Positions 3,285 to 40,100 of a stretch of 64,000 bases of DNA are shown in pieces. Under the pieces are notes generated by a model. That model saw nothing but the letters and a program-made list of their open reading frames with translations. It was not told the origin of the DNA and did not search any database. The translations under genes were made by a program, and so were the position numbers. The stretch comes from Malacoraja senta (lineage: Eukaryota): the NCBI GenBank assembly GCA_038087875.1, contig CM075987.1:18414001-18478000 (forward strand), in the 5' to 3' direction. Numbering within the stretch: position 1 is the stretch's first letter; the number at the start of each line of letters is the position of its first letter.

Positions 3285-3375
3285 TGAAGAAGGGTTTCGG
3301 CCCGAAACGTTGCCTATTTCCTTCGCTCCATAGATGCTGCTGCACCCGCTGAGTTTCTCCAGCATTTTTGTATAC
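3285..3375 (+). mobile_element. Short Penelope-derived insertion starting within a hammerhead motif
   Basis: TGAAGAAGGGTTTCGGCCCGAAACGTT; TSD CAATAACATTT (3274-3284, 3376-3386); lies just 3' of the gene B stop. Confidence 0.8.
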
Positions 3376-3451
3376 CAATAACATTTATAAAACTTGTAAA
3401 TAATTTGACCAAATTAAGTTGATGGGTGACTGAAGAAAATTAACGTGACTT

Positions 3452-5037
3452 TTAATCAAAATCCAATGTTTTCCTCAGATTATGAAACACGTCAATAACT
3501 GTGAGCTCGTCATCGGCTAAATGCTCTCCATGGGTGGGTGGGTTAAGCTTAACAAAGCGCTTGGGTAAATGGATATCCTTCCAGGTTCTGACCACAGTAA
3601 CTCCCTCATCCTTGGTTTGTATCTGATCAGGAGTTGGACTTCCATGGCTCTTTTCAGAGTGAACATTTGCCACCCTATTCCAGTCGACTCCTTCAGGTAC
3701 AGTTAGATTCCATTTCCCAAACCCTGTTCCAAATTCTCCCTTATAGAACCACCGGCTGTAAAATGGACTAAAGTGTGTCGATTTGAGTGCAGGATCAGAA
3801 GATTCAAATTGCTGTAGATTTTTATTTTTGACTGAGAGTGGAATCAAAATATTTTGCAGTTTAAGCTTATCCCTGCTCTCCCCATCACTGAGAATTGGCG
3901 AGTTTTGTGCTGCTTTATTCTGCATTTTCTTTTCTGCAGCTGGAAACTGCACCTCATCCATTAATTTAAAAACTGATTTGTACATTTTTTTGGAATAGTT
4001 TGTATTACCAAAATGCCTTTTGTGCAGATTGGAGTCTCTCCTTTCTTCTGCATTCCTATACAATAATTTCTCTGAATGTGTTGGGCATTGGATGTGTCCC
4101 TGTGGCTCCAAGTCCAATTTCATATTTGTTGAGGCTTTAGTTCTGGCAAAAGTATTTTGGAAACGTGGCTCAGATCTCTTGGTCCATTCCTCCAGATTAG
4201 TTCCTTGGTCTATTTTCCTGGTACTTGATTGCATGGGTGCACCAGTCTTTGAAGAGATCTTCTGTGAGAGGTTTGTCTCAGGCTGTTCTGAAACTGGAGC
4301 TGAATCAAGTGTTGTGATACTTTGTTTCCAAATCTCTTGACTCTGCACACTCCACGCGTAAGGCCAGCTAAATGATGCAGTTGCTGACCCAGCTTGGCTC
4401 CCTTTATCATCAGTAATTGTGTTGTTTGTTAAAGTTACACCACTGTTAGGTCCAGCAAAACTACCCACTAATGAAATGGGCGCTTTAGGGAGGGTGCTAT
4501 TTAACCCCAGTGTGTCTCCATCAGACTCTTTGCCGATAGGCATCTCTATTTCATTTAGCTTGGGTTCATCGTGAGCAAATATTAAAATGGGTCCGGGTGT
4601 CACGCCCGTTCTGGTTATAAATGATATGTTGTTTTCCACTTTCACTGCATCAGAGACATTGAACTCGGAGTCAGGTACTAACTTGGATCTTTTTGTTAAT
4701 TGAGAGCTTTCACTGTGATGCTTACTGCCTTGCAGCAAGTTGTGCTTTTGAGAGGTATTCAATATTGGTTCTTCACACTGATGGCTTTGGAGCAATGTCT
4801 GCTGATACTCAGGCAGTTCAACCCCAACGCTTCCTTCCATCTCAAGTTGTGGGGTATCATTTACTTTATGTTCATTAGAGGACTTGGACACTCGCAAGGC
4901 AGTTTTCTCTTCCTGTGACAGGATAACTTTGCATGGAGTATCTTCCTGCATTTTTTCTTGAAGTTTGCATTGGCCTTTCTTTGTTAACTTCAGGTTGTGA
5001 AGTGAATTGCTGGTGGCTGAGTGGATGGGCATTTTCT
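3452..5037 (-). CDS. Gene B exon 5 (long cytoplasmic tail, stop)
   Basis: The 526-aa ORF 3452..5032 is preceded directly by acceptor TTTTCCACAG|AG-AAA-ATG, in the phase needed to continue exon 4. Confidence 0.8.
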
Positions 5038-8000
5038 CTGTGGAAAATTAAAAATAAGGCATTAGCTGTTCAGGTGTTGTAGGTTAATATAACGTGCAGA
5101 CTCTCCATCAGTTATGCCCTCACCATGCTACTATAGACAAGTAAAATATAAATGCATCAATTGGTGTGACCTGATTTGACTTTCATAGGACAGTTGCTAT
5201 CTGGCCCAGGACAATATAGAGCCTAGAACAAACACTACACAGTACAAGAACAATGTCTGTGCTGAACGCGATGCCAAGTTAAACTAATCTCCTCTGCCTG
5301 CACCTGATCCATTCCCTGTATATATATATCCATGTACTTATCTAAAAGCCTTTTAAATACTTTTGTATCTGCATCCACCATTGTGTAAAAATGCTTGTCC
5401 CACACATCTCTTTTAAACTTAGTCCGCTCACCTTATACCTATGCACATTTCAACTCTGATAAAAAGGTTCTGACTGTCTACCCTATCTATGCCTCACATA
5501 ATTTATATACTTGTATCAGGTCTTCCCTCAACCTCAGAAGCTCCAGAAAAAACAATCCAAGTTTGTCAACACTCTCTTTATAATCGATACCCTGTAATCC
5601 AAGCAGCATTCTGGTACATGTCTTCCACACCTTCTCTAAAGCCCCCATATCTTTCCTGGAATGGGCCAACCTGAACTGAACACAATACTCCAACTGTGGC
5701 CTAGCCCAAGTACTATAAAGCTGCAACAGGACTTCTTGATGCAATGTCCCAACCGATGAAGGCAAATATACCATATAGGCTTCTTGTTTGTCATCTTGGG
5801 TTTGATGTTATTGCAAGGATCCATTTTGCACACATACAAAGAACAAATATTCCCAACAGCAACCTCTTAGACATAATATCTCTTGCAAATCTGATGATTG
5901 AATACAGTCATCAAAATCCACCTGCAAATTTAACTGCCCTACAAGTTAGAAAATGGCCAACCAAATTAAAAATGAATCTATTACCTCTTTCAGTATTTCC
6001 CCAGCTTCTTCCTTTTCCTTCATTCATGATCGCACTGCTAACAATGACTGTCCTTTCATTCTGTATGTGTACAACATTAGCTGCTTGAAGTAAACTGGGT
6101 AACGTTTTACAGGGTCGTAGTCCCTTGTACTTCCCTGCATTGTTTTCCCTGATCTCTCTTTCCATGGCCATCCATGATTCTGTGGGGATCTTTAAAGGTT
6201 CTCCCCCTTGCTCCACTTGGTTACCCTTAACGTTTTCTGTCTCATTGATCATCTGATGTGAAGCAATCACAGAGAGATTGGCAATCAGATCGCTGGCATC
6301 CAATTCCACTGGTGCTTCACTTGATCTTTTTGTTTGTAATGTTCCCTTTGCCTCATTGCTGTCCGTCTTGCGACTCTTCGGGTTTTGCGATCTCCTCCCC
6401 AGCCAGGTAACCAGCCAGATAGCTCCGACCAGTAAACATCCACCTAGGATGGAAAGATCACAGAATCCTGGATTATTGTGCAATAAAAGAAACAATGCCA
6501 CAGCTGCAAAATGAAGTGTAGAAAATACTTTATCGCTCAGAGTTTTCCAAGTGTAGCCGAGTCGTATCCTTTCAAGGCAGTTCCAATTTATGTCAAATAT
6601 CTCTCAAGGCAGGCTTATCCTGCTTGTGCACATTAGGCCTCAATGTTTAGGAGCTCTTGTCTCCTTACTGGCAAACCTACTTTGAATATTTAAACCACTG
6701 TAAAATATAACAGAGTACCATGGCATTTTAGTAAGAGAATGAATAAGAGGGAAATTAAATACTGTATTATCTCCTTGTGGAACAAAATTGTTTTGAGACT
6801 CATTATAATGACAAGAAACAGCCCAACTGTGGGGAACTGACTTCCTATATTTCAATTGTACATAATGATTGGGTCTATGAAATAATCAAATAGACAAAAA
6901 TAGTTAGAGGCTGAAAATGTGGGATAAGGTGCCAAGCAGAGCCAACCAGCACAGAAACTGTCTCTTCGATACACTGTGGCACCCATTTACCCAGGTTGAG
7001 TCTGCAGTCTTGTGTAGTTGCTGATGAAAGGGCATGACTGTGTATCATCAGTAACTGTCAGTCCACTGTGTTTGCTCAGGCCTGCGGGAACAGCAAGGCG
7101 CAAGCACTGATAAGATCTGAATGGAACCTTCTGAACTATTAATTTGAAGGAGGCCAAAGCAATCTTGTTCAAATTCTCACCTACAAATAGCACCTACAAT
7201 GTCTGAGGCAGCAATCGTAAGAGAAGGTGGCGGGCCAAGAAGATAAGATCCAATTGGAGAGATTAGGATCGAGATCGGTGATGAAAGAATGTAATTATCA
7301 AAATTCACCTGCAAACATGACTCCCTTGTAAATCAGAATATGGCTGACAAAATTGGGAATCAATCCATCACCTCTCTCAGTATCTCCTCTGCAGTCCGGC
7401 CCAATTTCATACATAAACAAATCATTGTGCCATGTTGCAACCACCTCACATTTGGTCCCCGTTCTATACTTGACTTCAGCAGTCCTTTACCTTCTGGACT
7501 ATGAAATATTTAAAAAGACCGAGTACATTCACCTACTAACAAATATAGGCTGAACTTTGAAGGGCTGTTGACCAGACCAAGACCATTGTTTAAAATTCAT
7601 AGAATTCCCAGATTATTAACTGTTTCCCCCACCTCCATAGATAAACATGTCCCATTGTTGAATTATTAACTTATTTTAATTTACAATTGTTTAAAAAATA
7701 TTGTATAAACTATGCCATTAACTGTTTTTAAAATACAGTAGTTTAACATGTAAATAATCAGATGCAAAGAATCCGTTAGTGCTACACAGACTTCCAGCTC
7801 ACATACAGTGTTGCTTTTAGTCCACAGACATTTGAACCCAATTTGAAAGGGTTTAGAAACAAAGACCACTTTGAATATTTGCCTCTGGAAGGACATTCAT
7901 CATTAACAATTTCAGCCAAGTTGCTTACTAATAATGATCTTTATTTCCTTACAGTCATTGGCCAAAAACGACTCAAATTCCTATGATCATATAACTTAGT

Positions 8001-10920
8001 GGCCAATGCACCTACCATCTCTGGGATGTTATATTTGAGATTGTAAAAAAGTAATATATTCTCACCAATGAATCCATAAAGCACAGCTTGAGCACCTGGG
8101 GCAGGAGTGACGTGTGAGGCTGTAGTTGTTGGCACTGGGGTTGTGGTTGAGCATTCAGTGGAATGCAGGTCCAGGATGAGTTTTCCTTTCAGTGGGGACG
8201 GGTTCTCACACACGAGACTACCTGCATCCTCCACAGCCTTTCGCCGTGATTCCAGCAGCATCATCAACTGGCAGCTGCACTCCCAGGGATTGCAATGCAA
8301 CTGCATCTTCTGCACAGACTCGGGGACAGTAGCCAATGTCATAAGCTGGTTGCCATACAGATTCAGCTTCGTCAGATTGTGAAAGGGTTCAAAGGCATCG
8401 CTGGCAATGAAAACAAGCTTGTTGTTAGACAAATCCAGCTCATAGAGGGCTCCCAGGCCGCAGAATGTGTCTGTGAATATGTATTGGATGAGGTTCCTAG
8501 ATGCATTAAGTATTTTCAGCAGCCTCAGTGTTGCAAATATGCGCGGCGGGAGATAGGAGATCTTATTTGATTGCACATTTAATGTGTGAAGCGAGGCCAG
8601 GTCTGCAAACCAGGGTGCCTTCAGCACATCCAGGTCATTTTGGAACAGGTTGAGTGTGGTCAGATTTGACAGGCCCATGAAGGCTGAGCTTTCCACGTTG
8701 CAACTGGAGAGATTGTTTCCGGTGAGTTCCAGCAGCTGCAGGCTGCTCTGTCCGCCCACTGACCCATAGAAGGCGTGGCTGGAAAGCGAGAGCCTGAACT
8801 CAGTGATGGACATGTAGTGCAGGTTGGAGAAGTTCTGCAAAGCTCTTGGTTCAATCCTTGCGACTTGTGACAATCCTTGCCCCTGAAGCAAGATCGTTTG
8901 CATAGACTTTGGTAAATCTGTAAGCACTTACACAAAGAGACAAGAGGATAAATGAATACTAATTTTCAGGAGCCATTCACTTCCACTGGTCCCCACTGAC
9001 ATTTCGCCTCCTCCCACCCTCCAGGTATCAGCATGACTGTCTAAACTGCTGGTTCCCAACCTCTGGCCATGGACCACAATTGGGCAGTGAAGGATCGACA
9101 CTGGGTCATGCAGGGATTCAAAATTGTTGAAAATTATAGCAAAGGTTGGTGGAAAAGTCCAGCAAAAGACATGAAACTGGTTTGTCACACAGCTTTGCTG
9201 CTCTTGTGTAAGATTTAGCACACAACGAGCAGGAGAATTCAAGGTCGTTGCCATATTCATTGCGAGTCTGTGAGTGAATCCTTCCAGGTTTTTCCAAGCC
9301 CATTAACAGAATTCTTTCCCCTCTTATTTCATCCTTTAATTTTGTTTTCAATTTTTTTTAACAATTATTTAATTTTGTGATTGACAAGGTTGCAAACTCA
9401 AATCATTTTGACAGAATTATCAATTTATTTAACCACACCATCTTAAAATACTAAATTTTGCTCAAGAATGATAAAGGTCAGGAGCCACTGGTCTGAACCA
9501 TCCTCCCTCTTACGCTTGCTTACCCAAGGAACCTACCTATGCCTCTAACTCCTGTTGAAATCCCCACTTACCTGGTTGCAGTGAAGGCAGAGACTTACAA
9601 TTGGCCACACCTTCAGCACAGGTGCAGAAACTGGGACAGTGCTGAGCAGCAGCGGACAGTAGCACTGCAACGAGACACAGGAACACAAAAATATCTGTTG
9701 AGAGACACAAAAGGGATGTGGGAGTCTAGTGCCAATGTGTAATCCACCATTTAATTAGATCTTGGCTAACCTTCACTTTTTTCACCCACCATTGTTACAA
9801 AGATATATATTTTGCCAAACCAAGGTCTATCACTTAATTTCCTATCTACAGCTTATGGGTGGGAGAGAATTGCCAATTTCCACAGCTTTTGTCCTAGGAA
9901 ATAAGCTTCCTGATATCACCCCTGTATTTAAGATGATGCCTCCTTATTCTGAAATTTTACAGTAACCAGTTTAATGAGGTCATAACTTTAATTACATGAA
10001 CTTAAAATAGTAGACAATGTTCAATGTTAATGGCTGATTGGACCCAAATTCCTGCCCAACTCCACTAACCCCGTTTCTAAGTGTACAACTGCAACATAAT
10101 AACCCATTTTTTATGCTCGATGGCACAACAGGTGTACTAAATTCCACTTTTTCCTATCCCATCTACCTGTGTTACCATTTCAGGGAGCTATGTACTTGCA
10201 CAAATAGGTCTCTCTGTACATCAACATTGCCAAGATTCCTGCCATTTACTTTACATGCCCTGCCAGAAAGTGGCTGCCCAAAATGCTACACCACACATTT
10301 ACCTGGTTCCATCTGCTACTGCTCTGCCTATCTTTCCAGCTGACCCATGTCCCACTTTCTTCACCACCTAGAACTCCACCAATTTTCATGTTGTCTGCAA
10401 ACTCACTAATTATATCCCCTATATTCTCATCCAACTCGTTTATATACATACACATTCAATACAACATAGATCCCAATCCCTGCGCTACACCACTTGTGAG
10501 ATCTCCAGTCAGATAAACTTCCTCTAACCTTAAAGCTATTGTCTTCAGTGCTGGACATTTCCACTCCAGGGAAAAGGTTCTGACCGTCTGCACTGTCTAT
10601 GCCTCTTATAATTTTATATACTTCAATCAGGTCTCCCCTCAGCCTCCAACACTCCAGAGAAAAATATCTAAGCTTTTCCAACGTCATAGCTAATGCCCGT
10701 TAATCCAGGCAGCATCTTGAGAAACCTTTTCTGCACCCTCTCCTAAACCTCCACATCCTTCCTGTAATGGGACAACCATGCAAACATAACATGTAAAAAA
10801 AAAGTGAAGTGCGCTGGAGTATAAATGTTCTGGAAAAGCTGCAGAACCACAGAAATATGAAATAATGAATATAAAGGTATGATTGTACTTACTGTTCATC
10901 TTTCTCCTATAAACAGTCAT
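3452..10920 (-). CDS. LRR single-pass transmembrane receptor gene B, complete 5-exon CDS join(10893-10920,9572-9694,8066-8926,5985-6443,3452-5037), 1018 aa
   Basis: All four introns are GT-AG and phase 1, and the exons sum to 3057 nt without an internal stop. Product: signal peptide (MTVYRRKMNNIFVFLCLVAVLLSAAA), LRRNT (CPSFCTC..C), about 9 LRRs, LRRCT (NPWECSCQL..C..C), Thr/Pro stalk, TM (AVLYGFIGGCLLVGAIWLVTWLG-RR) and a tail of roughly 660 aa. Confidence 0.8.
5214..5785 (-). mobile_element. Degenerate CR1 LINE fragment
   Basis: ORF 5487..5774 has LYSTWARPQLEYCVQF..LRLREDLIQVYK. Confidence 0.8.
5985..6443 (-). CDS. Gene B exon 4 (TM + juxtamembrane tail)
   Basis: Lies in ORF 5911..6501. 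Acceptor TTTCCATCCTAG|; GCLLVGAIWLVTWLG is followed by an RR stop-transfer; donor G|GTAATA is in phase with exon 5. Confidence 0.8.
8066..8926 (-). CDS. Gene B exon 3 (LRR array, LRRCT, Thr-rich stalk, start of TM)
   Basis: Lies in ORF 7941..8927. LxxLxLxxN repeats (LQLLELTGN, LTTLNLFQN, LYELDLSNN, LTKLNLYGN) and NPWECSC; acceptor TTTGTGTAAG|, donor G|GTGAGA. Confidence 0.92.
9572..9694 (-). CDS. Gene B exon 2 (signal peptide + LRRNT)
   Basis: Acceptor CTCAACAG|, encodes IFVFLCLVAVLLSAAAQHCPSFCTCAEGVANCKSLPSLQP, donor G|GTAAGT. Not in the ORF track. Confidence 0.85.
10030..10780 (-). mobile_element. Degenerate CR1 LINE fragments
   Basis: Peptides YINELDE..ISEFADNMKIGG (RT motif) and FSLECWRLRGDLIEVYKI. 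Confidence 0.8.
10893..10920 (-). CDS. Gene B exon 1 (start, MTVYRRKMN)
   Basis: ATG at 10920, then a perfect A|GTAAGT donor. Phase 1 matches exon 2. The second ATG in the exon is an alternative start. Confidence 0.6.
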
Positions 10921-11156
10921 TTCACAGAATGGAATTCCATCAGCTTCTCCAAGACCGTTTCAGATCTGTTCTCCACCGTCTGCTGCGTCTGGTGATTGTT
11001 GTCTGATGGCAGGTACCTGGGATTCTCAATAACTGCAGCATTTATTCTCAGATGGTCTCTGCTTCAGTGCAGATGTTAATGAGCCATGTTACAAGATATA
11101 AACATTAACAGTGTTGACAGCCCCTAGAGCGGCAGGAAGGCGGGCAAATTGGGACT

Positions 11157-11178
11157 GGGCATGAGTCATGACATGTCC
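11157..11178. promoter_or_regulatory. Overlapping AP-1 / p53-p63-like element upstream of gene B
   Basis: GGGCATGAGT-CA-TGACATGTCC (two imperfect RRRCWWGYYY half-sites) contains a perfect TGAGTCA; about 240 bp upstream of the gene B ATG. Confidence 0.3.
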
Positions 11179-12856
11179 TGATATTCTTAATTACTTTAGT
11201 TAATGAGTTAAATAACTGATCAGAACCTCAAGGAGCCTGTAGCAGGAATCTGAAAGGTTTAATGAGCAAATAGCTCTCCCACGACACTGTTTAAGATCGT
11301 TGCTTAGTTGCTAAACTGAGCTGTCTAAGATGATAACTATCACTATCTGAGGTACGTACATACCTAGTCAACTTGCTTTATCTATTTAATGCTAGTTCCT
11401 CACCATTTTCTCCTTATCACTACAACCATAGGAGAGAGTTTGTCCTTTCTAATTACATCAATGGACTTTGCCGATAATAGAGTACAAGATTGACTTTAAA
11501 GCACTTTAGTTCAGATTGTAGTTTGAGTTTAGCTTGATTGTATTATGTATGGTATTTATCTGATCCGATTGGACAGCATGCAAAACAAAGCTTTCCAATG
11601 TACCCCAGTACACGTGGCAATAATAGATCTGAAAGCTCAAGGGAAACTTTAAAAACTAACCACCAAAATGATTTAAATAATTATTTTTTTTGCAGATGTG
11701 AGGACGGAGGGAAGTAAATGTTGGTGTTGGGGGGCAGTGAGATTGAGAGTGATGAGAGGAGGTGGGTCGGGGGGGGGGGGGGGGGAGAGAGAAAAAGAGA
11801 GAGATTAAATGTTCCTGGGCAGTTTGATCAGGATTTTATCTCAATATGTTGAAGGAGACTTTAAACAAAATCACTGCACATCACATTCCCCAGAAAGCCA
11901 TACTTGCAATTTTCAAAGTTACCTTTGTATTGAAACAAGCATACACATGTAGTCAGGAGAAGAAATTATGAAGGAAAAACACAGGCCACACTAAAGGCAC
12001 AGTATATTTCAACTAAAGCAAATCATTTATTGCAAAGTAATACAGAAATTACAAAGAGAAACAAAACAAAAAATCACAATTAAGCATACGTATTCATTTA
12101 AATTTTAAGGAAATACTAGCATTTTTATAATACTCTTTTCAAATCTAATCATGAATGAAAATTATTATTTTCATAATTAAAAATCTTCTACTATTAACAT
12201 GATAAAAATTCAATTCACCATAATAATCCATGAATGTGGCATGCTGCCTCAGTTAGGATAAATTTGATCGATTATAGTCCTAACATGAGCAACAAGGGGC
12301 AAAGCCGTTTTCTAGGTGACTTGCAAGTTTGACATAACTGCTTTAAAGCACAAATGAGGCAATTATTTTTCTCTCCGAAGGTCGAGAGTGACCACAAAAT
12401 TACTGAATTATTGTAAAGACACATCTCTCATACCACAGTAAAACAAGTCTGCTTTCCTTAACCAATCCGGAACATATGTGACTTTAGCCTCAACAGCTTA
12501 GCTCCTCAACACAACACAGAGCCTCAACAGCAGCAAATGGGCAAACTCGTTACAGTTAATGATACCAGATCCCATAATTGAATAAAAATTGTAATCATGA
12601 ACCACTCACCGTATGTTGAAAAGTGAAGTGGTTCTGGGCTTCGGGCCGATGCAGCTCATTGAATCTGTTGGTGAATGGTGACGTGCAGATACAGAGTAGC
12701 CATAGGGTTTGTTCACCTAGTGACACTGAGGACAAAAGCTGCCAAATCTGCTAAGATTCTTTTTCTAAAAAGCCAAAAATTTACCTAAAAATTGGGAGGA
12801 GCCATTTAACTTTAAAATATGTTAAAGATTTGGGCACATGTTGAAGACTTCACTCA

Positions 12857-13013
12857 ACATAGAAACATAGAAAATAGGTGCAGGAGTAGGCCATTCGGCC
12901 CTCCATTCAATATGATCATGGCTGATCATCCAAAATCAGTACCCCGTTCCTGCTTTCTCCCCATATCCCTTGATTCCGTTTGCCCTAAGAGCTAAATCTA
13001 ACTCTCTCTTGAA
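12857..13013 (-). mobile_element. CR1 3' end
   Basis: Near-identical to the 3' end of the element at 2434-2600, with CATAGAAA tail. Confidence 0.85.
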
Positions 13014-13137
13014 AATTAGCTCTTAACCCGCACTATTTGACTAAGTCTCAAGGGTACTGCAACTAAAGCATGACTGGTCAACCTTGCTATGTCCCAGAAA
13101 CCAATTATTACAAACCCGAACATTGCTTCACAAGTGA

Positions 13138-13222
13138 GGGGCGGCACAGTGATGCAGCGGTTGTTGCTGCCTCATGGTGCAAGAGATCTGGGTTCGATCC
13201 TGACTACGGGTGCTGTTTGTAC
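13138..13222 (+). mobile_element. tRNA-derived SINE head
   Basis: A-box-like GTGATGCAGCGG and B box GGTTCGATCC. Confidence 0.7.
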
Positions 13223-13248
13223 ATTTTGACATTTTGAAAAGTAAAACA

Positions 13249-13254
13249 TTTATT
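13249..13254 (-). terminator. Candidate poly(A) signal of gene A
   Basis: AATAAA on the minus strand about 900 nt after the stop, followed by U/GU-rich sequence. A second AATAAA lies at 12026-12031. Confidence 0.35.
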
Positions 13255-14150
13255 ATGCTAGAATAAAGAAACACTCATCCTCGCATTTTCACTTGCCTGG
13301 TCATGCCCTATATACTCTGCAGCTTATTCTCTCTTGTATGCAACTCTGCTCAAGTCTTTTGATATTTCTCTGCACTGGGGGTAATTTACAGTAGATAATT
13401 GATCTACCAGCGTATCATTATGACGTGGGAGGGAAGCTGAGTATCCAATGGAAATCCATTGTGCTCCTGTCAACCATCACATTTGACTGAAACATACAAA
13501 ATCCTGAAGAGATTGAATCTGCAGAAGGGACTCGACTGGAAATGTTGCCTGTCCCTTCCCTCCACAGATGCCAAGTTTGTCCAGCATTTTGTGTTTTGCT
13601 CAAGATCCTCAAGGATTTGGGTGGGTCCTGGAATGTCCACTTGTGGGAGAATCTACAACAAAGGGTTTAAATACAAAGAGAAACCCGAGGCAGAGATGAG
13701 GCTTCATTTTCCTCTGAAGGCAAGGAGTCTTTGAAAATCTCTTTTTCACAGGACAATGGATGCAACATTTCTAAATATTTGAGGCATTGGGTGATGTTCG
13801 ATAAGCAAGGTTGGATGGTTACCATAGTTAGGCAACAATGCAGAGACGAGATTAAATCACGTTAGCCATGACGTTATGAATTGAAAGAGCAGGATTGAGA
13901 GCCTAATCCTGCTTCCAATTCACACATTTACATATTCATATGCACATCTTCTAAACATTTTTAGCACATTTAAAATGCTGCAGCCATATCATAATTCAAA
14001 CCATCCCAAGGACTATCAGGAGGATAGTCATTAGCCATTGACTATGATTAGTCATTGTACAACAGATGGACAGACTTTCAACTGAAGAACTGAGGCTCAC
14101 ATCAAACTTCCCATCTAAATCTGCAGACGATAGCCTGAAAGTTATTACAT

Positions 14151-15259
14151 TCAATGGGTTATTTTGAATCGCTGGCTTTGTTTCCATCGCTCTCTGGTAC
14201 GGCGTCCTTGATTTGCCACAATTTCATGCAGAAGATTAACATATCCATATTCACTGTCCCAGGGAAGATTATCCCTGGTTGGCGAGCCTGTATCATCTGC
14301 TGTTTCACTGTTTGCTGTGGCTGGATCACATTTTGAGCCAGGAAGTGTCACAGCCTGAGGGTTCAATTGGCCTTTTTTCACTCTATTCTCATAATTCTTT
14401 TGTCTCAAATCCTTTCCTCGGCCACCCACAAATCCTCTTTTGACTTGCGAGATATTTTCTTGACTTCCACCTTCCTCTGGTCTTTCACTTTCCCTGCCAT
14501 ATTGTCTTTCAGTCACACTGCTCACCGCACTGATTGAATCACACGTCTCACCGGCATCTTCTTTTCTCACCTTTGCTCTTGCCATTGAATTTCTCTCTGT
14601 ATCGTGCCTACCATTCTTCACTGTCGTAGTTAGAGCTTGCTTCGCCGAAGGATTCACATTTGTGCGATTGATGTTATCATCAGTTGCCACTTTGGACAAT
14701 GGTACAATTGTTCCTACAGGTTTGTCATTCCCATTCCTATCCCATTTTATTACATAGAACCCTTCCTGGTTCTGGGCCAATGCTTTTGAATTGTTCACTG
14801 TTCCATAATCAAGAACTCCAGCAGATTGACTTTCAAAGACTGTTGAGGATGGATCACAAGTCTCCTGGCAAGGACTGGCATTGCTCCTTAATTTTTGTTC
14901 TTTACTCGTGACCATCTTGTCTTTTTCACTCTCCCATTCCTCAATCAAAAACTGAGACGTTGAAGCATTTGTATTTGATATCTCTTGATTGTAATGTGTT
15001 AATTCAGCCAGATCCTTGCGAGCAATTTCATTTACCTGATGAACCCCTACTTTTGTTGATGCTTTATGTTTTTTGTTCCCATCCTCTCCCGACATTGAAT
15101 TAATTGACTGACCTTCAGCATTAGATTTTTCTTCCCGAGACTCCTTTTCTGGGTCACTTTCCTGTTTTTTGCATGTTTGCCTTCTCGGTATGATCTGCTT
15201 CTTTTCTTGTTTCCTTTTCAAAAGCAGAAGAACTAGTAGAAGGGGAATGGCGAGCAGCC
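14151..15259 (-). CDS. Gene A exon 5 (TM + cytoplasmic tail, stop)
   Basis: Lies in the 377-aa ORF 14151..15284. Acceptor CTTCCTCAG|; LLAIPLLLVLLLL is followed by KRKQEKK. Confidence 0.85.
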
Positions 15260-18200
15260 CTGAGGAAGCATAGTGAGAACGCATAGGTTAGAGCTGAAAT
15301 TGAAAGGCCCTTCCATCACTTTCCAGGAAAAAAAAGAAACTAGGGGCAGAAAGGAAAACTTGCAAAGACTTATGTTTCACCTCCAGCACATGGGATAAAA
15401 TGGACAGAACAAAGCAAACATCTTCTTTTCCCAGTGTCATTGGCATTCGGGCACAGTGCCATTTGGGCAAAGTGAATGCAGCAAAGAGAGGCAGGGACAT
15501 CTGCCCATCCCTGCGCCATTCATTATGTGCACTCCAATCCAATGGTTCCAAGAGGAGAAGATGGAAAATTTGATTTCACCCCTCACTTTCACTGAAAAAA
15601 CTTAAGAATTCTCAAAATTGAAAATAGAAATTTCGCAATGGTGGGGAAGGTGCAGATCAGATACTAACTGAAGATTGAACTGGTTTGTCCCTCCCCACCA
15701 GCTAGTGTTATTCACAGGGACATGGAAAAAAATGATGAAATATTCATTGTTACATTCAAGTTCACCATAACTGATAACCAAATGAGTTTAAAGGAAATGT
15801 TACACAAAGTCTAGCATACAATAAACATTTGTAAAACATACCTAGCAGCCCAAGTAATTTAGGAAGCACTTTCCTAGAAGGAGGGTGTTGATAAGGCTGG
15901 ATTGTACTTGTGGTTGTCTCACAGCCAAAATCAGATATATTCCAGACTGGGGTTCCTAGTAAGTTGGGAGGGTCAAGGCAAGTAACAGAATACTCCTCGT
16001 CAAGAATAGATTTATTCATAAAGTCTGGAAATATTAAAGGTCAAATTATTGAGAGAGCTGTACCGGAACACTATAAAGATACATTAAAAATAAAAACAGC
16101 AAACTCATCGGGCATTGATATTGACAGAGAATTAGGACTTTACAACAACACCATCAACTTCCACAGATGTTGCCTCAACCTGTTGACTATTTCTAGTACC
16201 TACAATATTTTGCATGTGGTTTCCCATTCTTTCAAGATATAATCATACCTACATTTATGTCATGGATCGTTTTTGCATTTATTTAAAGATTATGCAAGAA
16301 AGGGAAGCATGAAATAGCTAAACAGCACTTCCACGCACAATGAGATATTTTACCTCAAATCCAGTTACCTCACCAATCTCCATATTTCTTGGTTCCCTGA
16401 ACATTCAAATATTGCTAAATTTGAACTCTAGAACTGCTCATTATTTAGTAAAATATATTATATTGAAACACATTGTTAATCTGTTAATATGGTGGAAGAG
16501 CAGTACAACAATTACCTTACTGATCTAACTATTTAGAAGAAGGAATGAATGATATACAAATTGAATTCAAACCTCAACATGGCACCAAGGAGTATTTCAA
16601 AATCAAGATCATTAATTTAATAAATCGGAAATAAATATCAATAATTGTGATCATCAATAAATTTGGTCATAATTACAAAATTATCTTTCCATTCTTATCT
16701 GGCCAAGATTTCATGCAGCCAGACAGGATGAGACAACAGACAGATGCTGGAATCTTGAGCAAAACACAAAGTGCTGGAGGAACTCAGTAGTTCAGGCAAC
16801 ATCTGTTGAGGGAAATGGCCAGACAACGTTTCGGTTCGGGACCCTTCTTCGGACTGCTTGGAGTGGAAGTGGGGGGGGGGGGGGGTTGGAAAGGGAAGAG
16901 AAGTAAAGAGGTGGGGGTGAGACAAAGCCTCGTAAGTGGGTACAGGTGAAGGGGTGATGCTAGATCGGTGCAGTAAGTGACAAAAGCTCAAGGTGAATAG
17001 GAGACAAAAGTGTGTCAGATAAGCAGAGGAGTGAAATGTGAAGCCAGAGGGTGGGATATGTGTGGAAGGAGGGGGAGGGGACACAGGAGGAGAAATAAGG
17101 GGAATAAAAGGAAAATGTGGGATGCAGGGATGGGAGATGGGTATACAAAGGAGAGGATGTAAGCATGGTAACTGGTGGGTGGGAGAAATAGGAGCACACT
17201 GGGGTGGGGAAGGGACATGGGAAAGAGAGGAGACTTAGGGTTGATATAGCTTAAAATTACACAATTCATTGTTCATATCATTGGATTGAAAGCTGCCCAA
17301 GAGGAAAATGATGTACAGTTCCATCAAATTACATGTGGCAATGGAGGAGGCCCCTGGACAGAAAAGTCGGCATCAGAATGGGAAGGGGTGTTAAAATGGT
17401 TCACGACCAGCAGCTACAACAGGATATGATAAAATATCTCTACTAAGGTTGTCCTGAAGTGACCCAGAAAACAATCAATTGTTCCCAAGCTTTATGTTGA
17501 AGGAAAGTAAGAATAAAGATGGGAGAGGCCTCCTTACATGGATATTAAGTCACGTTCAACTGCTACAGTTTTGCCATCAAATGTTAAATATTTCTAACAC
17601 CAACAATATTTTGCACTTTAATTTCCGATTCGGCCCAGATTGTAGGAAGTCAGCAAGAATCACGTAATGTCCATTAAAAGAAATTACCTCTGAGGAAGAT
17701 TGCCAAACCAGCAAGTTCACAGGAGCAACACCAAGGATTGCCCTGGAGACCAAGCCTCTTGGGATGAAAGTCTACAAATGTCTGTATCCTCAGCAAGGTC
17801 AGGTTATTATTGGCAAGATTAAGGAAGGACAGCTTCAAATTATTCCTGAAACTCTGGTCTGCTATGGTTCTAATCATATTTTGAGAAAGATCGAGTTCAG
17901 CCAGATTGGTAAAGTTGGACAGGGTGGTCTCATCAATGGCGTAAATTCTGTTTCTGACCAAAGAAAGTTTAACCAGGCTTGCAGGGCTGGTGAACCAGGA
18001 GGCACTGATGGCAGACAGTTTATTATTGTCTAGAATCAGGACAGCTACACTGAGGAAAGAATTGAAAGCTCCTTGCTCGATACTTGTGACATCACTGTCG
18101 ACGATTGTTAAGTTGGTGACAGAGGAGAGGCTTGAGCTGTTGAACATGGTGCTGTTGATAGGTCCAATCCCACTCCCCACTTTGAACAAAAGGTGTTTCA

Positions 18201-21103
18201 CGTTGGAAGGATACAATGAAGCTGAAAAACAAAGCGTTTTGAAAGTCACAAGTTTTACTGGCGAAGAAAGGAAGCTTCATTACCTGGGCTTCAACAAGGC
18301 CCCAAAAATTCTCAAAACGGATTTCACATGGAACATTGCAGACAGAATTTTCACTGGTAACATTGTAGGTAATGGGCACAATTAACAATGGCATTGCCTG
18401 TAACATCCATTATTCATGAACAGAAATAACAAGACAAAATGTTGTTGCTGCTTCTGAATACAAGAAGCAGATTCAGAAGTGACCCATTTGGCTCTGGGCA
18501 TTTTTCACAGTAAAAACCAATACCTGAATATCATTTTCCAGCCCTATCCCCATGTACTTAATTAACTATCCCATGTACATAGCTTAAATTTGCCCAACCA
18601 AATTAATGTCTGAAATCACATTCCTTGGCATAGGAAAATCCAAATATTTACCAATATCTGAGTGAAGAATTTATCCTCATTTCAGGATTGAAAGGCCTTC
18701 CCTTATTTTGAGATTATTATTCCCTTGTAAAATCCTCAGCAGAAAAAATATCCTTGCTGCATTTATCCTGCACAGCTTTTTATAAAGGCAAGTAGGTGCT
18801 CTCATTCTCTGAACTCTTTTTTTAAAGCATAGTTTATTCATTCCCTTCACATGACAGACTGATGATTGATTGAATTGAAACACAGCATGGAAACAGGTCC
18901 GTTGGCCCACCGAGTTCACACCGGCCATCGACCCACCCGTTCACACTAATTCTACATTATCCCACTTTTGCATCTAAACCCTACACACTAGGGGCAAATT
19001 ACAAGGGGTAATTAACCTATAAATTGGATCCGGATCAAACCCAGATCTCTGGTGTTGTGAAGCATCAGCTCTACCAGAGGCACTGCTGTGCCACCCGTCA
19101 GGCAAATTTGGACAATATTCCCTCCATAATAAAGCCAATCTACTCAGAAAGAGTACACGGTATTTTTAAAAATGTGGACAGACACCACACCATCATCGAC
19201 CAATAAAAGTGGAGCAAATTCTCCAGAAATATTTAGTGAATGCAAGATAATTATATCTGGATTTTAATAATGCAGCAACGCCAAGCCAACCATCCAATAA
19301 TCCCACTTTATTTCCTCACCTTCCATCAACTCCCCGCCCCAACCCTCCCATTAACCTGTACAGTAAGACCACTAGTGGAAAATTAACCAAGCAACCCCTG
19401 GTGGGAGGAAACCAGAGGAACCTCATATGGCCAGAGAGCCAAACTCTACAGAGATGAGTAGGTGCCAGGATTGAACCAAGGCCACTGTGGTGAGAGACAC
19501 GAGCTCTAACAGCTATGCTTCTGTGCTGCCCGTTTCATGCACTTTAACTGTGTGGTCGGCGAGATTGATAGGATTCAACCTCTCAGTCTCCCCTCTGCCG
19601 AGGATTAGCATTGCTCCTCTTGTGTGTAAAGGTCTGGACAGACTTTGAAATTAAATTTATTTGCCTGATTACAGTACGGTCAGATGAGAATAACTGACAT
19701 AATGATACTTACCGTGCGGTATAACGGTGCAGAGGTATACATTATTATTTACGTTTACGCATGGATCACTGGCCTCGCACGATGAATGCAGCAGACTCCA
19801 AGCATAAAGCACTGACAGCAATACTGGGATGAAAAATAGGACAACATTAATCAACAGGGAATACGAGGTTCAAGAGACGATCCGGGATACGAGGTTGAAG
19901 TGACGAATAATAATAATAATATTATGATTCAAATTATTATTATTATTTTGACGACGTGAATGAGAAGCTGCAGTTGTCGGATGGGGTGGGGGGTCGTTTT
20001 CACTCATTTCACCCAGTGTTTCCCTTTACGGATCACTGCCAGAGTTAACCCCATTAACCCCTTCTCACGGGGCGGATTTCTTGTTACTGACGGCGCGACC
20101 AACTCAGAGAAAGCCCTAATACATGGGCATCACTGTGCGGACTGGAGAAGGTGGTGGGAAGGAAGTGGTCGTTACACTAGATCGTCTCTTCAACTACCTC
20201 TGACGGCGAGCACTCGCCCCTTTCACGCGTCCACTGACTCAGCGCCTCGGAAAAGGTCCAGGTTATGGTCCAACTGTTTGAACAGGTGTTTAGGAGACAC
20301 AAGGAATTGCAGATGCTGGAATCGTCAGCAAAACACAAAGTGCTGGAGGAATTCAGTCGGTCAGGCAGCATCTGTGGAGGGAAATGGACAGACGACGTTT
20401 CAGATGGGGACCATTCTTCAGACTGGGGAGAGGGGGGTCTGGAAAAGAGAGTCAGAGCCCTTCGACCCAACTAGTCCAAGATGCCCCACCTACGCTAGTC
20501 CCATTTGTCCGCGTTTGGCTCATTCGCTCTAAACCTTTCCGATTCATGTGCCCGTCCATGCACCTTCTAAATGCTGTCAACGAGGAGTTTAATTGTTATG
20601 TGGACGGTTGTCCATACACACGATAATTAAACTCTCTTGACTCTCGATCTGTGGAGGGAATGCAGAACGATCGAGTTTGAGGAAGGGTCCCGACCCGAAA
20701 CGTCGTCAATCCATTCCCTCCTGGGATGCTGTCCGAATGGCTGAGTTACTCCGGCATCCGGTGAGCATCTATCAGTGCATCGATCAGGCGTGGGTGCATT
20801 AGAGTTTCAAACACAAACAGCGTTATACCTGTACTAAAATTTAATCGGTATAAGAACAAGTACTTACAATTCGGGTGCAGCAGCATCTATGGAGCGAAGG
20901 AAATAGGTAACGTTTCGGGCCGTCTGAAGAAGGGTTTCGGCCTGAAACGTTGCCTATTTCCTTCGCTCCATAGATGCTGCTGCACCCGCTGAGTTTCTCC
21001 AGCATTTTTGTGTACCTTCGATTTTCCAGCATCTGCAGTTCCTTCTTTAACACTTACAATTCGGGTTTCGCGTTCGAGCGGTTGCCTGCGGCATCGGGAA
21101 CAT
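14151..21103 (-). CDS. LRR single-pass transmembrane receptor gene A, complete 5-exon CDS join(21058-21103,19713-19823,17688-18221,15842-16024,14151-15259), 660 aa
   Basis: Four GT-AG phase-1 introns and a 1983-nt open frame. Product: signal peptide (MFPMPQATARTRNPNLLLSVLYAWSLLHSSCEA), Cys cap, about 7 LRRs, LRRCT split over exons 3 and 4, TM (LLGLLGLLAIPLLLVLLLL-KRK) and a tail of roughly 350 aa. Confidence 0.8.
15842..16024 (-). CDS. Gene A exon 4 (rest of LRRCT, stalk, start of TM)
   Basis: Lies in ORF 15762..16019. VTCLDPPNLLG..GC completes the LRRCT cysteines; acceptor TATTTCCAG|, donor G|GTATGT. Confidence 0.85.
16736..17405 (-). mobile_element. Penelope-like element 3' fragment (gene A intron 3)
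   Basis: Terminal repeat with a mutated hammerhead motif (16825-16856), and a decayed GIY-YIG C-terminus (17230-17405) similar to 32608-32770. Confidence 0.75.
17688..18221 (-). CDS. Gene A exon 3 (LRR array + start of LRRCT)
   Basis: Lies in ORF 17674..18249. Repeats VAVLILDNN, LVKLSLVRN, LAELDLSQN, LSFLNLANN, then GNPWCCSCEL; acceptor TTTTTCAG|, donor G|GTAAT. Confidence 0.92.
18878..19096 (-). mobile_element. tRNA-derived SINE with CR1-type tail
   Basis: Reverse-strand B-box variant (GGATCAAACCC on +) and a GGAAACAGGCCC-type tail. Related copies lie at about 19330-19530, 29720-29850 and 55445-55702. Confidence 0.7.
19713..19823 (-). CDS. Gene A exon 2 (signal peptide + Cys cap)
   Basis: Acceptor TTTTTCATCCCAG|, encodes LLSVLYAWSLLHSSCEASDPCVNVNNNVYLCTVIPH, donor G|GTAAGT. 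Confidence 0.78.
20877..21051 (+). mobile_element. Palindromic Penelope-derived element inserted at the gene A exon 1 donor
   Basis: 15-bp direct repeat ACTTACAATTCGGGT (20862-20876, 21052-21066); internal inverted repeat; hammerhead core CTGAAGA..GAAACGTT at 20924-20951. Confidence 0.85.
21058..21103 (-). CDS. Gene A exon 1 (MFPMPQATARTRNPN)
   Basis: ATG at 21103 in a CpG-rich region, donor T|GTAAGT. Phase 1 joins exon 2 to complete a signal peptide. Confidence 0.6.
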
Positions 21104-28235: not shown

Positions 28236-29467
28236 TCTATATATATTATCTTATATTACTAAAACTCTCATCTTGTTTGTTTGTATGCGTGTGCGTGAGA
28301 TCCCAAAACTCCGCCAAAACGGTATACGATAGCACTACAATTCTTGGCCAACGTTACTCACCATTGTCCTGGGGGGATGTGCAGTACCAAGTTTTGTTCG
28401 GATTAATGTTACATTTTACAAGTTATTGACATTTTAAACTTTACAAAAATCATTTTTAAAGCACTCTTCCACTTCCCCTGCCCATCAGCCGCATTCAACA
28501 TCACAATGGGATCCCGAATATCATTTTTTTAAATCGCCATTTTCAGTGACATTGATTTTATTCTAAAGAAAAACCCCTTTTAATCAAATTCTTCCGTTTT
28601 CATTAACAGCTAACATTGTCTTTAGGTTATTTAAAAGAAAAAACGCGATTTTCATTGAGAATTTCACTTTTTTGTTTTTTATTGCGATTTTTATTGTGGG
28701 GAGGGTGGGATAGGGGGGAGGTTTCAATAAAAAAATACATCGTGATTTTCATTGTGGGGAGGTGGGATAGAGGAAGAAGTGGGGGAGCAGGGGGATAGAG
28801 GGAGAGGAGGGAGAGGGTGGGGAAAGTGGGGGAGGTGAGGAGGGAGAGTGGGGAGTGGGGGATAGAGAGGAGGGGGAAGTGAGGAGGGAGACTGGGGAGG
28901 TGGGGATAGGGGAGGTGAGGAATGGGGGAGGAGGGGGATAGAGGGAGAGGAGGGGGTATGGAGGAGGGAGGGGTTATGGAGGGAGGGAGTGAGTGACTGA
29001 GGGTAGGGGAAAGGAGAGGGAGGGAGGGAGGGAGTGGGGGAGGGGAGGGGGAAGGGGGAGGATGAAGAGGAGGGGATGAGGATAGGGGCAGGAAGAGGGA
29101 TGGCGAGGTAATGGAGGAGGGGAGGGGGAAGAAGGAGGAGGGGAGGGAGGGGGTGAGGGGAGGAAGCAGAGGAGGGTTGGTGGAAAGGTGGGGAGAGGGA
29201 GGATAATGGAGATGGGGAATAGGGGACTGAAGAGGGAGAGTGAGATGCGTTCACATTGATCTTATATTTTACAGGTTATTGCCATTTTGAACTTTAAAAA
29301 CAGCGCAGTCGCACTCCCTTGCCGGCTGCACCTGCGCAATTGGGGATGGTTGCGTGACTCGCATCACAACAGGAACCCGTCAGCCGCAACTGCACAGTTG
29401 GGGGCTATGGGTCAGTGGTGGAACATTGCCTTGGGGGACGGGTACAACGCGTCTGCTCCTGGTCTAG
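28236..29467 (+). mobile_element. Non-autonomous Helitron
   Basis: Begins A|TCTATATAT and ends CTAG|T after a GC-rich imperfect hairpin; inserted between A and T with no TSD. Confidence 0.7.
28757..29240 (+). repeat. G-rich polypurine low-complexity tract inside the Helitron
   Basis: About 480 nt of almost pure G/A with dozens of GGG runs. This tract explains the Pro-rich ORF 28724..29254. Confidence 0.9.
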
Positions 29468-36879: not shown

Positions 36880-37182
36880 TCATTTTCCAGTTGCTTGCTT
36901 CTTTGGCACTGCAGATCGTTTGGCTTGCCACAAATGGTTATGAATCGTGATTGCGTCCACACTGACCGACATGGTTTTCGTAGGTATTAGGCTAAACAGC
37001 TTTCTGTCTGAGCTGTACTTGTAAAGCTTATCGATCATCTTCCTTTGAATGTTTTTTGGCCCTGTGCCAGTTAACTTCTGCATCTCCTCAGAGTCTGGGG
37101 AATAGGCATAAATTGCTCGGAACTGGCAGCCCGCATCACGAAACAAGATGATGTAATGGTTAGCCTCGCATTTCTCAAGCTC
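36880..37182 (-). CDS. CAMSAP1: CAMSAP1 last coding exon (CKK domain, TGA stop)
   Basis: ELEKCEANHYIILFRDAGCQFRAIY..SVDAITIHNHLWQAKRSAVPKKQATGK*. Confidence 0.96.
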   Translation of the reverse strand, partial: ELEKCEANHYIILFRDAGCQFRAIYAYSPDSEEMQKLTGTGPKNIQRKMIDKLYKYSSDRKLFSLIPTKTMSVSVDAITIHNHLWQAKRSAVPKKQATGK

Positions 37183-40100
37183 CTAGGAAGATAAATGGAA
37201 AACAATTTTTAAAGAAATTTTGAACTGTAAATTTGACAGTTTTGTGGTTTAAAAGAAATCCTGTGCTTCCTCTCTTCCTAATCTCACATGCAGAGAGCAG
37301 TAAAATTGGCTTGCTACCTGATTTGGGAGAAAGTTAGCAGTTTGACCCAATTCCCAATATTAGTTGGCTCTGGACATGACCCAACAGTTCTGGTATTGTG
37401 TGAACGGTGCTGTAAAGTTAGATACCCCAGTTATGAGTGCAAGAAATCAGCCAGTTGAACATCCAACTTCATAGGCGGTGGGATAGGTTGAGGACAGATA
37501 CTGTGCATAGACACAAAGTGTCACAATACTTTTCTGAAACATGAAATAGCAATCACATTGGTTTTTAAGCTAAGAAATGCAGCCATTGGTGAAAATCTCC
37601 TACATTAATTTTCATCTATATTCAAAGCTTGATCGCAGGAACATATTAAAAGTTCTTGAACCAACATCAAACACAACATTGTGAGGAACCCTCGTAATTT
37701 TCTTTGCTGTTGAGGATTCCTGGATGATGCCGTGAGATTCTTTTACCAAGAGAGCAAAAACAAAAAGTCCAAGAAGAGATTTTTTTTACAATTATGATTG
37801 GTTTTGATTTGTAAAATTCAGAAATATAATTTGCTCTGGTTAGAAACAGTTGGAGGTAGTCATCAGAAATGACAGATCTGTCAATTTTAAATTATCAGGC
37901 ACATACAAGCATTTAGAATGATCCAGATGAAGGGTCTGAACCTCAAACTCAGCTGGCCATTTCCCTCCTCTGATGCTGGCTAACCCACAGTTCCACCAGC
38001 AGCTTGTAGTCTCCACATCCATAGTCTCTTGTGTCAGCCTTCAGAAAAAAATCCTTTTGGCAGAGGGTTGTTAAGAACCTGGGATGTCTTCCAATGGGCA
38101 ACAGATTTGCCAAAAAATTACTTCTGTTTTAACAATAAGTTGAACAATATGTGAATAAGAGCCTCGTAGTAGGGCATTTAAACTTTGGATTGCTTAAGCA
38201 AAAATCCACCAAAGGTAAAACAATCCTAGTTACATGTGCAGTCATCATCCATGCTAAAAGATAAATTTATTTTGATACCTGGTTTAAATCATATTCCTTC
38301 TTGACATATATTATTCTCTATTTTACAGCATCTTTTGTTGTGACTTATTTTCACATTGATTATATGTACAGTTTTCTACCACTGCCGTACAATTCATGAT
38401 TTTCAATTAGAATGGAGTATCTTTCAAAATCATATCTTAAATAGGGTGCATCAATTATTACATTTATAAGTTCGTACATTTTAGAAATACTTAAAAACTG
38501 AATTTTGAAGGGAACTGTAATACTGTAGGTGGAGTGGGTTGGGGACACAAATCACTTCTTATAAAACTGATTATTAAATGAGTTAAAGAATAGTTGGTGT
38601 CGTGAAGTTGCGATACATTTAAACATATAATTACCTGATCAATGTGTTTACCACATTTATATTGTTTTTCTGTTACTGACCTCAAGTATTGAATTTTTCT
38701 GCGGCTCATTTACTTTTCCCGCAAGACAGCAATGTGAGATAGCATTATGAATTATTGGCTTGTTCGATTTTGAACTTGGTTCCTTAAATAATTTTGGACC
38801 TGGATCAGAACACAAACTTGGTTAAAATCAAAACATTGGTTCTCTCAAGACAAACTTCAAACAAACACAACTTAAGAATTTTGATATTACCAGTGTACTC
38901 AGCTACAGATGCGATCGATGAGGCTGTGGATGCATTTTCCCAGTCTCGTTCCGTGCTCCTACTCTGATTTCGACTCAACACTGAGAAGGTCTCCATGGAG
39001 TCTGTCCTGTATATTAAGAAAATAAAATAACTCTGAACATTTAGCAACCATTAGTTGTAATTCCAATAAACACATTGCTGTGCTAATTGGTTGGGAAGAA
39101 ACGAGTATTAACCAAAAATTACACTTTACATGAGTATGATATAGATCTACTGCGAGAGAAAAAGATAGATAGGGATGGAAAGACAGTAGGGCATGAGCAG
39201 CGGGGCAAAGAGGAGCAAGAGCAAGAACAATTGCATAGGTTGCTTGTGCTGAATTGTCTTTTGCATATTGTGTCTATATTTTTTACAGGAATGTGAAATG
39301 ATTTAATCTATGTCCATTCTAGAACACTTGCATCATGCTTACCTTTGTGAATAACCGCCACTACCACTGCCGCCAGCAGAATTCACACTTTCTGCTTCAG
39401 TGGTAGCGGCGGATGCCAGAGACAGACTCGACCCAAACTGAGTATTGCTCAGATTGTCAGCTAAAGGAAAGGAAACAAAAAACATACTTCACGCATCATT
39501 ATTATGTAAGCAAAACAAACTGCCTTTATACCTCAAATTGACAATTTTATTCCACATTTTATTTCTTTATCAAGTCTTTTGGGTTCCAAAATGCAAAACA
39601 GTAAATAAATGAAATTAAATGGAAAACGAATCTTAACCTCAATTTACTGTTTTAGAAAATATTCGTGACATGTAGAAGATGTAGATTCATGTTTTAGAAT
39701 CATGCTAATTTTTTGAAGATCACCTACTAGCCAGGCAACCATTTCAACCGACAGAAGTAGCCGTTGAGGCAGGTACAATAACAACATTTAAAAGACATTT
39801 GGATAGGAAAGGATTAGAAGGATATGGGCCAGACGAGTGCAAATGGGACTAGTTGGGATGAGGCATCTTGGTCATGCACCTGTTGGGCTGAGGAGTTGCA
39901 ATTTATTCGCTGTCATTCAATGCGGCATTTAAACAGACTCCCATTCTAAGTAATAATTTAATGCTACCTTCCTATAGTTACACAGTAGATTTTTTCCCCC
40001 TCACTTTTCTGTTACTCTTAAAAAATGTTCTAAGATTGTCAAATCATACAAAAAATATAGGGTCTGTAGAAAAAGTGGAAAGAGAGTACATTCTGGCAAT

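Follow-up and report, generated by a model that had tools for sequence, protein, structure and literature searches.

The LRR_Only class of leucine-rich repeat (LRR) proteins combines a signal peptide with Cys-capped extracellular LRRs and has no other recognizable domain (Dolan et al. 2007, PMC2235866). In a 64,000-nucleotide (nt) stretch of the genome of the skate Malacoraja senta (GCA_038087875.1, contig CM075987.1, forward-strand positions 18,414,001 to 18,478,000; the whole stretch is called the window here, and positions are counted from its first letter), we find two adjacent genes, A and B, whose products have the features of this class (PMC2235866): each has a leader, Cys caps, one transmembrane (TM) helix, and Pfam matches to LRR families only, and the tail of B has no confident fold. 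A and B are real, conserved, and unnamed LRR-only receptor genes. On sequence grounds, we judge them to be real because they are conserved across species, because the skate-Pristis ratio of nonsynonymous to synonymous substitution rates (dN/dS) is 0.35-0.57 across all exons tested, a range that indicates purifying but fairly relaxed selection, and because orthologous protein models run through the predicted junctions. Gene A is the skate orthologue within a family of elasmobranchs and teleosts that has no name, and gene B is its downstream neighbor in sharks and rays alike. These findings add a defined but unnamed vertebrate family to the LRR-only surface receptors; nothing about them is surprising for the LRR superfamily, and their value lies mainly in annotation and evolution.

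Several described systems share parts of this layout. The Elron cluster has a signal peptide, an LRRNT, six LRRs, an LRRCT, and one TM helix (PMC2235866), and the BK gamma subunits carry a basic cluster after the TM helix (PMC4442785). Gene A has the same ectodomain plan as these Elron/BK-gamma proteins (LRRC26, LRRC38, LRRC52, LRRC55, LRTM1/2) and lies near a Slo-family channel gene. Their tails are short, whereas those of A and B run to 355-665 amino acids (aa), ten times longer, and no specific sequence affinity to them appears among the best PDB and Swiss-Prot matches. A "GPIb-alpha-like" cluster and GPV are among the weaker look-alikes: GP1BA and GPV share with A and B an LRRNT, LRRs, an LRRCT, a Thr/Pro-rich and probably O-glycosylated stalk, and a single TM helix, and the teleost relatives of A add to the likeness with their long mucin-like stalks. 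GP1BA is encoded by a single coding exon, and its short tail binds filamin and 14-3-3; A and B, in contrast, have five coding exons each and long tails that show no similarity to that of GP1BA. The mammalian orphan proteins LRRC53 and LRRC66 come closest: in them, a signal peptide precedes a capped block of LRRs, and a single TM helix leads into several hundred residues of tail with no recognizable domain. The LRR-only type I layout that the first-pass annotation had likened to these two proteins is confirmed, and they are the nearest named look-alike clusters. A full-text search of the literature on LRRC53 and LRRC66 returned gene-list mentions only; they are likewise functionally uncharacterized. 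Sequence searches of the PDB gave generic LRR matches only.

Gene Models and Protein Architecture

Both gene models were re-derived from the window sequence by inspecting each exon boundary and joining the exons, which rebuilt exactly the two frame-consistent, head-to-tail five-exon genes of the first-pass annotation (A, 660 aa; B, 1018 aa). Both lie on the minus strand, from the gene A ATG at 21103 to the gene B stop codon at 3452, and all eight introns are bounded by GT..AG and interrupt the frame in phase 1. The coding part of gene A exon 1 (21058..21103) reads MFPMPQATARTRNPN plus 1 nt and ends in a phase-1 donor; its start codon is uncertain, with an in-frame skate ATG at 21103. Exon 2 (19713..19823) encodes the hydrophobic core of the signal peptide and the Cys cap (SCEASDPCVNVNNNVYLCTVIPH), and exon 3 (17688..18221) encodes an LRR block of ∼6 repeats together with the first half of the LRRCT (Pfam LRR_8, E = 4.7e-26). 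Exon 4 (15842..16024) completes the LRRCT and runs through a short stalk into the TM helix, of which it encodes the first half (..KLLGLLG). The rest of the helix is encoded by exon 5 (14151..15259), along with a polybasic juxtamembrane stretch (KRKQEKKQIIPRRQ) and the tail of 355 aa down to the stop codon; this exon also contains the C-terminal motif of the A family (DSEYGYVNLLHEIVANQGRRTRERWKQ, 14178..14258).

Gene B begins with a short coding part of exon 1 (10893..10920, MTVYRRKMN plus 1 nt, phase 1), followed by exon 2 (9572..9694) with the signal-peptide core and the LRRNT (CPSFCTCAEGVANC). Exon 3 (8066..8926; Pfam LRR_8, E = 2.6e-31) encodes the 8-9 LRRs and the LRRCT, continues through the Thr/Pro stalk, and breaks off midway through the TM helix (AVLYGFIG). 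Exon 4 (5985..6443) completes the helix (GCLLVGAIWLVTWLG) and adds the initial 137 aa of the tail, and the open frame of exon 5 (3452..5037) contributes a further 527 aa of tail and the stop codon. The B-family C-terminal motif, HLADDELTVIDVFHNLRKTLDFD, lies at 3455..3523 and is predicted to be helical. Two other boundaries were considered and rejected: a 7-nt candidate for exon 1 at 9792-9786, which is not conserved in Pristis and gave way to 10920-10893, and an exon 3 acceptor at 8917, replaced by one 9 nt upstream that matches the orthologues.

Comparison with other species is consistent with these junctions. For gene A, they agree with Pristis P0001, Chiloscyllium P0002, and the perch gene; the exon 4/exon 5 junction matches P0001 and P0002, and exon 2 aligns with the N-terminus of P0002. 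For gene B, they agree with the protein models of Mobula (P0005) and Heterodontus (P0006). Exon 1 of B is homologous to a Pristis exon that ends in ..RKMK before the donor GTAAGT and to the N-terminus of P0005, the acceptor and donor of exon 2 are both conserved in Pristis, and both junctions of exon 4 match P0005.

Each protein has a hydrophobic leader, a Cys cap (four Cys in B, three in A), LRRs, and an LRRCT with four Cys; a short Thr/Pro stalk connects these to the single TM helix, beyond which lies a long cytoplasmic tail (355 aa in A, ∼665 aa in B). The rebuilt models of both genes display the signal peptide split over exons 1 and 2 and the TM helix split by a phase-1 intron that had been described at first reading, and in each case the helix is interrupted at a Gly codon (A, LLGLLG/LLAIP; B, YGFIG/GCLLV; the slash marks the intron). 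The count of 7-9 LRRs first proposed for each gene holds for B, with 8-9, but is slightly too high for A, with ∼6-7. No Ig, FN3, TIR, or kinase domain had been seen, and Pfam agrees, assigning LRR families only and no domain to any tail exon of A or B at E up to 0.1. Membership of the Toll-like receptor or receptor kinase classes was rejected on the same evidence and on the low confidence of the B tail model throughout, and a likeness of the A tail to the cadherin cytoplasmic domain (Atlas score 0.87) was set aside, as Pfam gives it no backing. The AlphaFold model of the B exon-3 ectodomain is an LRR solenoid (predicted template modeling score 0.70; core predicted local distance difference test (pLDDT) 85-96). 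In the B exon-5 tail, pLDDT is below 50 at all 527 of 527 residues, and helices are predicted only at conserved islands, the C-terminal motif (residues 502-523) included.

The A-Type Family and Its Chromosomal Locus

A search with the tail exon of gene A recovered Pristis pectinata LOC127581955 (P0001, 58% identity) and a Chiloscyllium protein (P0002, 36%) and reached one Perca protein through the C-terminus. Exon 2 is 67-71% identical to Pristis L001 4761-4877, and exon 3 shows 75% identity with Pristis, at a dN/dS of 0.35, and 39% with the LRR exon of the A-like gene of perch. When the perch protein (P0011, 846 aa) was used as the query, ∼90 teleost proteins were found among percomorphs, salmonids, and killifish, nearly all of them named "uncharacterized" and a few misnamed SLITRK, mucin-5AC, or LRRC24-like; beyond these, scores drop abruptly to generic LRR matches such as Slit. 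A SLITRK identity was rejected because it requires two capped LRR domains, and A, B, and P0011 each have one LRR block with one LRRNT and one LRRCT. The skate A ectodomain is 39-41% identical to the teleost A-type proteins, which span ∼640 to 990 aa and share with it the basic juxtamembrane stretch. Skate A and the perch A-like gene also agree in three phase-1 introns: one in the leader, one following the cap, and one within the TM helix. We note that the stalk of teleost A-type proteins (P0011, P0049, P0054) is mucin-like and variable in length, with repeated ..TTPP.RPTSETKTSVQPKPSD.. units and extra small exons.

A defining feature of this family is its C-terminal motif, EY[GA][YF][VIM][DN]LLHE[IV]V.N.GR[RW]TRERWKQ, which is near-invariant from sharks to salmonids and percomorphs. 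Gene A carries this motif and lies downstream of CAMSAP1, as the perch gene does; gene B lacks the basic GRRTRERWKQ half. Hardly changed across lineages, these 25 residues offer a handle for finding the cytosolic partner of A.

Relatives of gene B form a narrower set. Its exon 3 is 54-60% identical to the elasmobranch orthologues, and a HMMER search with the exon-5 tail of the spliced protein against 1.84 billion representatives returned six matches and no orthology to a named gene. Five of the six carry a source name, and all five are elasmobranch: uncharacterized proteins of 887-1263 aa from Mobula, Heterodontus, Cetorhinus, Rhincodon, and Stegostoma, whose sequences run through the predicted B junctions. 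The remaining match is a Logan contig of a close relative. The B-family C-terminal motif is conserved in P0005-P0008 and P0010. Across word-based protein searches and exhaustive HMMER, no named orthologue of A or B was found; every relative found is an "uncharacterized protein LOC..." or is misnamed, so the initial statement that neither gene could be assigned to a named orthologue stands. The literature on six teleost LOC identifiers of the A family holds nothing functional.

The upstream neighbor of A in the window is most of a CAMSAP1-type gene (36883..54917, minus strand), which serves as the synteny anchor. A CH exon lies near 54.9 kilobases (kb), and one exon of 892 codons spans 45536-42861. 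Coiled-coil regions are encoded by exons close to 41.7 and 40.4 kb and the CKK domain by exons spanning 38821-38660 and 37182-36883; the encoded protein ends in ..HNHLWQAKRSAVPKKQATGK. The CKK exon scores 179 bits against CAMSAP1 in the PDB and 112-116 against CAMSAP3, which, as far as this exon can be compared, identifies the gene as CAMSAP1-type. In Pristis, A is followed by B, as in the skate, and the genes called in Mobula and Heterodontus run from an LRR gene through B to a convergent Slo-type channel gene (Ion_trans_2/RCK/BK_channel_a). The perch locus holds CAMSAP, whose exons are collinear with those of the window, then a single A-like LRR gene and the convergent channel gene; no second LRR gene was found there. 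Taken together, the order CAMSAP, A, (B), convergent Slo-type channel in Mobula, Heterodontus, and perch and the CAMSAP1-type score place A and B in an old CAMSAP1/KCNT block, flanked by the 3′ ends of CAMSAP1 and of a KCNT-type (Slo2) potassium-channel gene. The A-type gene keeps this place between the two flanking genes in sharks, rays, and teleosts. In human, CAMSAP1 and KCNT1 are convergent neighbors at 9q34.3, with no LRR gene known between them. We also observed that residues 1-85 of the Heterodontus B orthologue P0006 join an A-type tail piece, NPTSLIRGDMSTAKR (compare Pristis A, NPTSLIRGDLSTTKR), to B, which suggests either A-into-B read-through transcripts or a chimeric gene model.

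Relationship of A to B and Competing Explanations

The first-pass annotation had proposed that A and B are ancient, highly diverged paralogues. Tandem placement on one strand, phase-1 introns at three shared positions (one in the leader, one following the Cys cap, and one at the Gly codon of the TM helix), and a very short coding part of exon 1 in both genes speak for this proposal, as does a match between the tails: in tail-to-tail hhalign comparisons of the last 120 and last 350 residues, the C-terminal motif is the top local match (P 0.002 and 0.016, respectively), with a joint consensus of roughly P..E.LL..[DN]E[YL].[YFL][IVM][DN][LV]L[HY][EN][VL]. The ectodomains do not bear it out, being similar only at the background level of LRR proteins. 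On these comparisons, A and B are likely but unproven paralogues. Apart from this match, the most conserved island of the B tail (residues 712-730, ∼4330-4390 in the window; SFSWPYAWSVQSQEIWKQS) ends in WKQS. This tetrapeptide was considered as a second resemblance (A, RERWKQS; B, QEIWKQS) and rejected, as it is not conserved in the B orthologues, which have W[SN]QS; the echo is probably chance.

We consider it probable that A and B are intact, conserved type I LRR-only surface-protein genes, that B arose by duplication of an A-like gene, and that their tails work through linear motifs. An ancient tandem duplication would have given rise to B, whose ectodomain and tail would then have diverged almost past recognition; B would in this case illustrate how far a tandem copy can drift while retaining its exon plan and a trace of a motif. 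At the cell surface, the capped LRR solenoid on its short O-glycosylated stalk may bind an extracellular ligand or counter-receptor. Intracellular activity of the protein would depend on short linear motifs set in a tail that is otherwise disordered, and not on an enzymatic or death/TIR-type domain. Candidates for such motifs are the basic segment next to the membrane, the few islands of conservation, and, at the C-terminus, an acidic-hydrophobic helix, LLxD[DN]E[YL]x[YFL][IVM][DN][LV]L[HY], which could recruit a cytosolic adaptor or sorting factor and so serve in signaling or sorting.

Several observations weigh against this reading. The hhalign motif match is short and weak at P 0.002-0.016, and the A and B ectodomains share 28-31% identity (59-94 bits), a score no better than that of either against Slit, TLR, or CPN2-like proteins. 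Within the reach of searches restricted by length and shared words, B was not found outside elasmobranchs and A was not found in tetrapods; if A is truly missing there, a conserved receptor was lost on the way to mammals. The four public sequencing runs that contain this DNA are genomic only, with contigs collinear through the introns, even depth, and no spliced joints, and the predicted junctions therefore rest on homology. The first exon and start codon are the weakest part of the gene A model: the start codon is not conserved in Pristis, where the homologue of exon 1 (L001 4090-4181) carries two 1-nt indels that take its ATG out of the reading frame of exon 2, and P0001, the RefSeq model of Pristis A, starts no earlier than the stalk. 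Either another start is used in Pristis, or the assembly or the gene differs. The AlphaFold model of the B tail was built on seven sequences only, and the ligand, the partner, the tissue, and the roles of the motifs are all matters that we infer.

The strongest competitor, which we nonetheless regard as doubtful, is that A, B, or both are diverged orthologues or whole-genome-duplication paralogues of LRRC66 and LRRC53, with B corresponding to LRRC53 and A to LRRC66, which would make them genes already known by other names. Architecture and lengths are similar, the top language-model clusters for a B orthologue are LRRC53 (0.96, 192 features) and LRRC66, and the best clusters for the perch A-like protein, besides its own, are LRRC66; however, Atlas scores mirror overall architecture and serve as leads only. 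Foldseek comparison of the B ectodomain with Swiss-Prot models aligns Macaca LRRC53 across the whole ectodomain, but only in 18th place (23% identity, E = 7e-8) of a flat list that includes LRRC15, RTN4R, LRRTM, and LRRC70, and thus no better than RTN4R, LRRTM, or LRRC15. Beyond the LRR block, no sequence homology to LRRC53 or LRRC66 was found either by HMMER with the B tail, whose named matches were the elasmobranch uncharacterized proteins, or by word-based searches with the A tail and the perch A-like protein, which returned neither name, and annotation pipelines have given neither name to any relative. The neighborhoods differ as well: the locus here is the CAMSAP1/KCNT block, and no synteny was found with human LRRC53 and LRRC66, which lie at 1p31.1 and 4q12, respectively. 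A and B resemble LRRC53 and LRRC66 in architecture only, and membership in either family is not established.

Somewhat less probable still is that the two LRR-only genes have no common origin and are simply neighbors, their intron phases and C-terminal likeness being generic or due to chance. The background-level ectodomain identity fits such a history, extracellular modules as a rule have phase-1 introns, hhalign gives low probabilities (13% and 3%), and perch has A only. It would, however, leave to coincidence the common strand and adjacency in sharks and rays, the combination of an intron at the TM-helix Gly codon with one after the cap and a short exon-1 coding part, and the placement of the best tail match, which is C-terminal in the A and B families alike.

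The first-pass annotation also raised a receptor pair, and we think it improbable that A and B form an obligate heteromer. The tandem arrangement has persisted throughout elasmobranch history, small-residue motifs are present in each TM helix (A, GLLGLLG; B, GFIGG..G), and the Heterodontus model that fuses part of the A tail to B hints at read-through transcription. Against these points, perch retains A without B at the locus, and tandem duplicates usually remain adjacent without interacting.

The convergent channel gene would offer another candidate partner. A Slo-type gene adjoins the LRR genes in the relatives of the skate and in perch, and A has ∼6 LRRs between its caps and a basic KRKQEKK stretch after its TM helix, a layout like that of the Elron proteins (PMC2235866) and the gamma subunits (PMC4442785), so that A, B, or both might be auxiliary gamma-like subunits of the neighboring Slo2 (KCNT) channel, as LRRC26/38/52/55 are of BK (Slo1). 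If true, an LRR partner would have stood beside its channel for >400 million years in fishes and would have been lost in mammals, and the principle of LRR auxiliary subunits would extend from Slo1/Slo3 to Slo2. We consider this very unlikely: no BK-gamma protein occurs among the top 60 PDB sequence matches of the A LRR exon or in the Foldseek top 30 for B, the tails measure 355-665 aa versus ∼40 aa, and adjacency of vertebrate genes rarely means shared function. Least credible of all is that A, B, or both are pseudogenes or gene-prediction artifacts, for which one could cite the lack of spliced reads in the genomic-only public runs, the nonconserved A start codon, and a repeat insertion that duplicates the first A donor (described below), in the face of 10 of 10 open exons, dN/dS below 0.6, and intact orthologous models in many species.

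Repeats and Other Features of the Window

A hairpin-like repeat of ∼175 base pairs (bp) at 20877..21051 (minus strand) is inserted just 3′ of the first donor of gene A and is flanked by a 15-bp direct repeat, ACCCGAATTGTAAGT, at 21066-21052 and 20876-20862. As a result of this target duplication, the donor GTAAGT is present twice (21057 and 20867). The insertion is not present in Pristis L001. The window has further pieces of related repeats, such as those near 3317-3439 and 47431-47595.

Between gene A and the CAMSAP1-type gene, an open frame at 32608-33369 contains a GIY-YIG-like motif (..CQLVYIGETKLRLGDHFAEHLRSV..) in a region of strong GC skew; it resembles the end of a Penelope-like retroelement that carries the endonuclease. 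Transposon debris was seen at 34168-34485 (plus strand) and at 5487-5774, 10427-10687, and 52497-53043 (minus strand), comprising a C-terminal fragment of a Tc1/mariner transposase and several CR1/L2-type reverse-transcriptase tails (..RPQLEYCVQF.., ..LRGDLIEVYKI..); two of the fragments lie inside or beside introns of A and B. Finally, CT-rich low-complexity tracts at 16695-17269 and 28587-29275 give rise to Pro/Ser/Leu-rich pseudo-open reading frames with a GC skew of 0.19-0.32. The first of these tracts sits in intron 3 of gene A, and these frames were rejected as coding exons of A.

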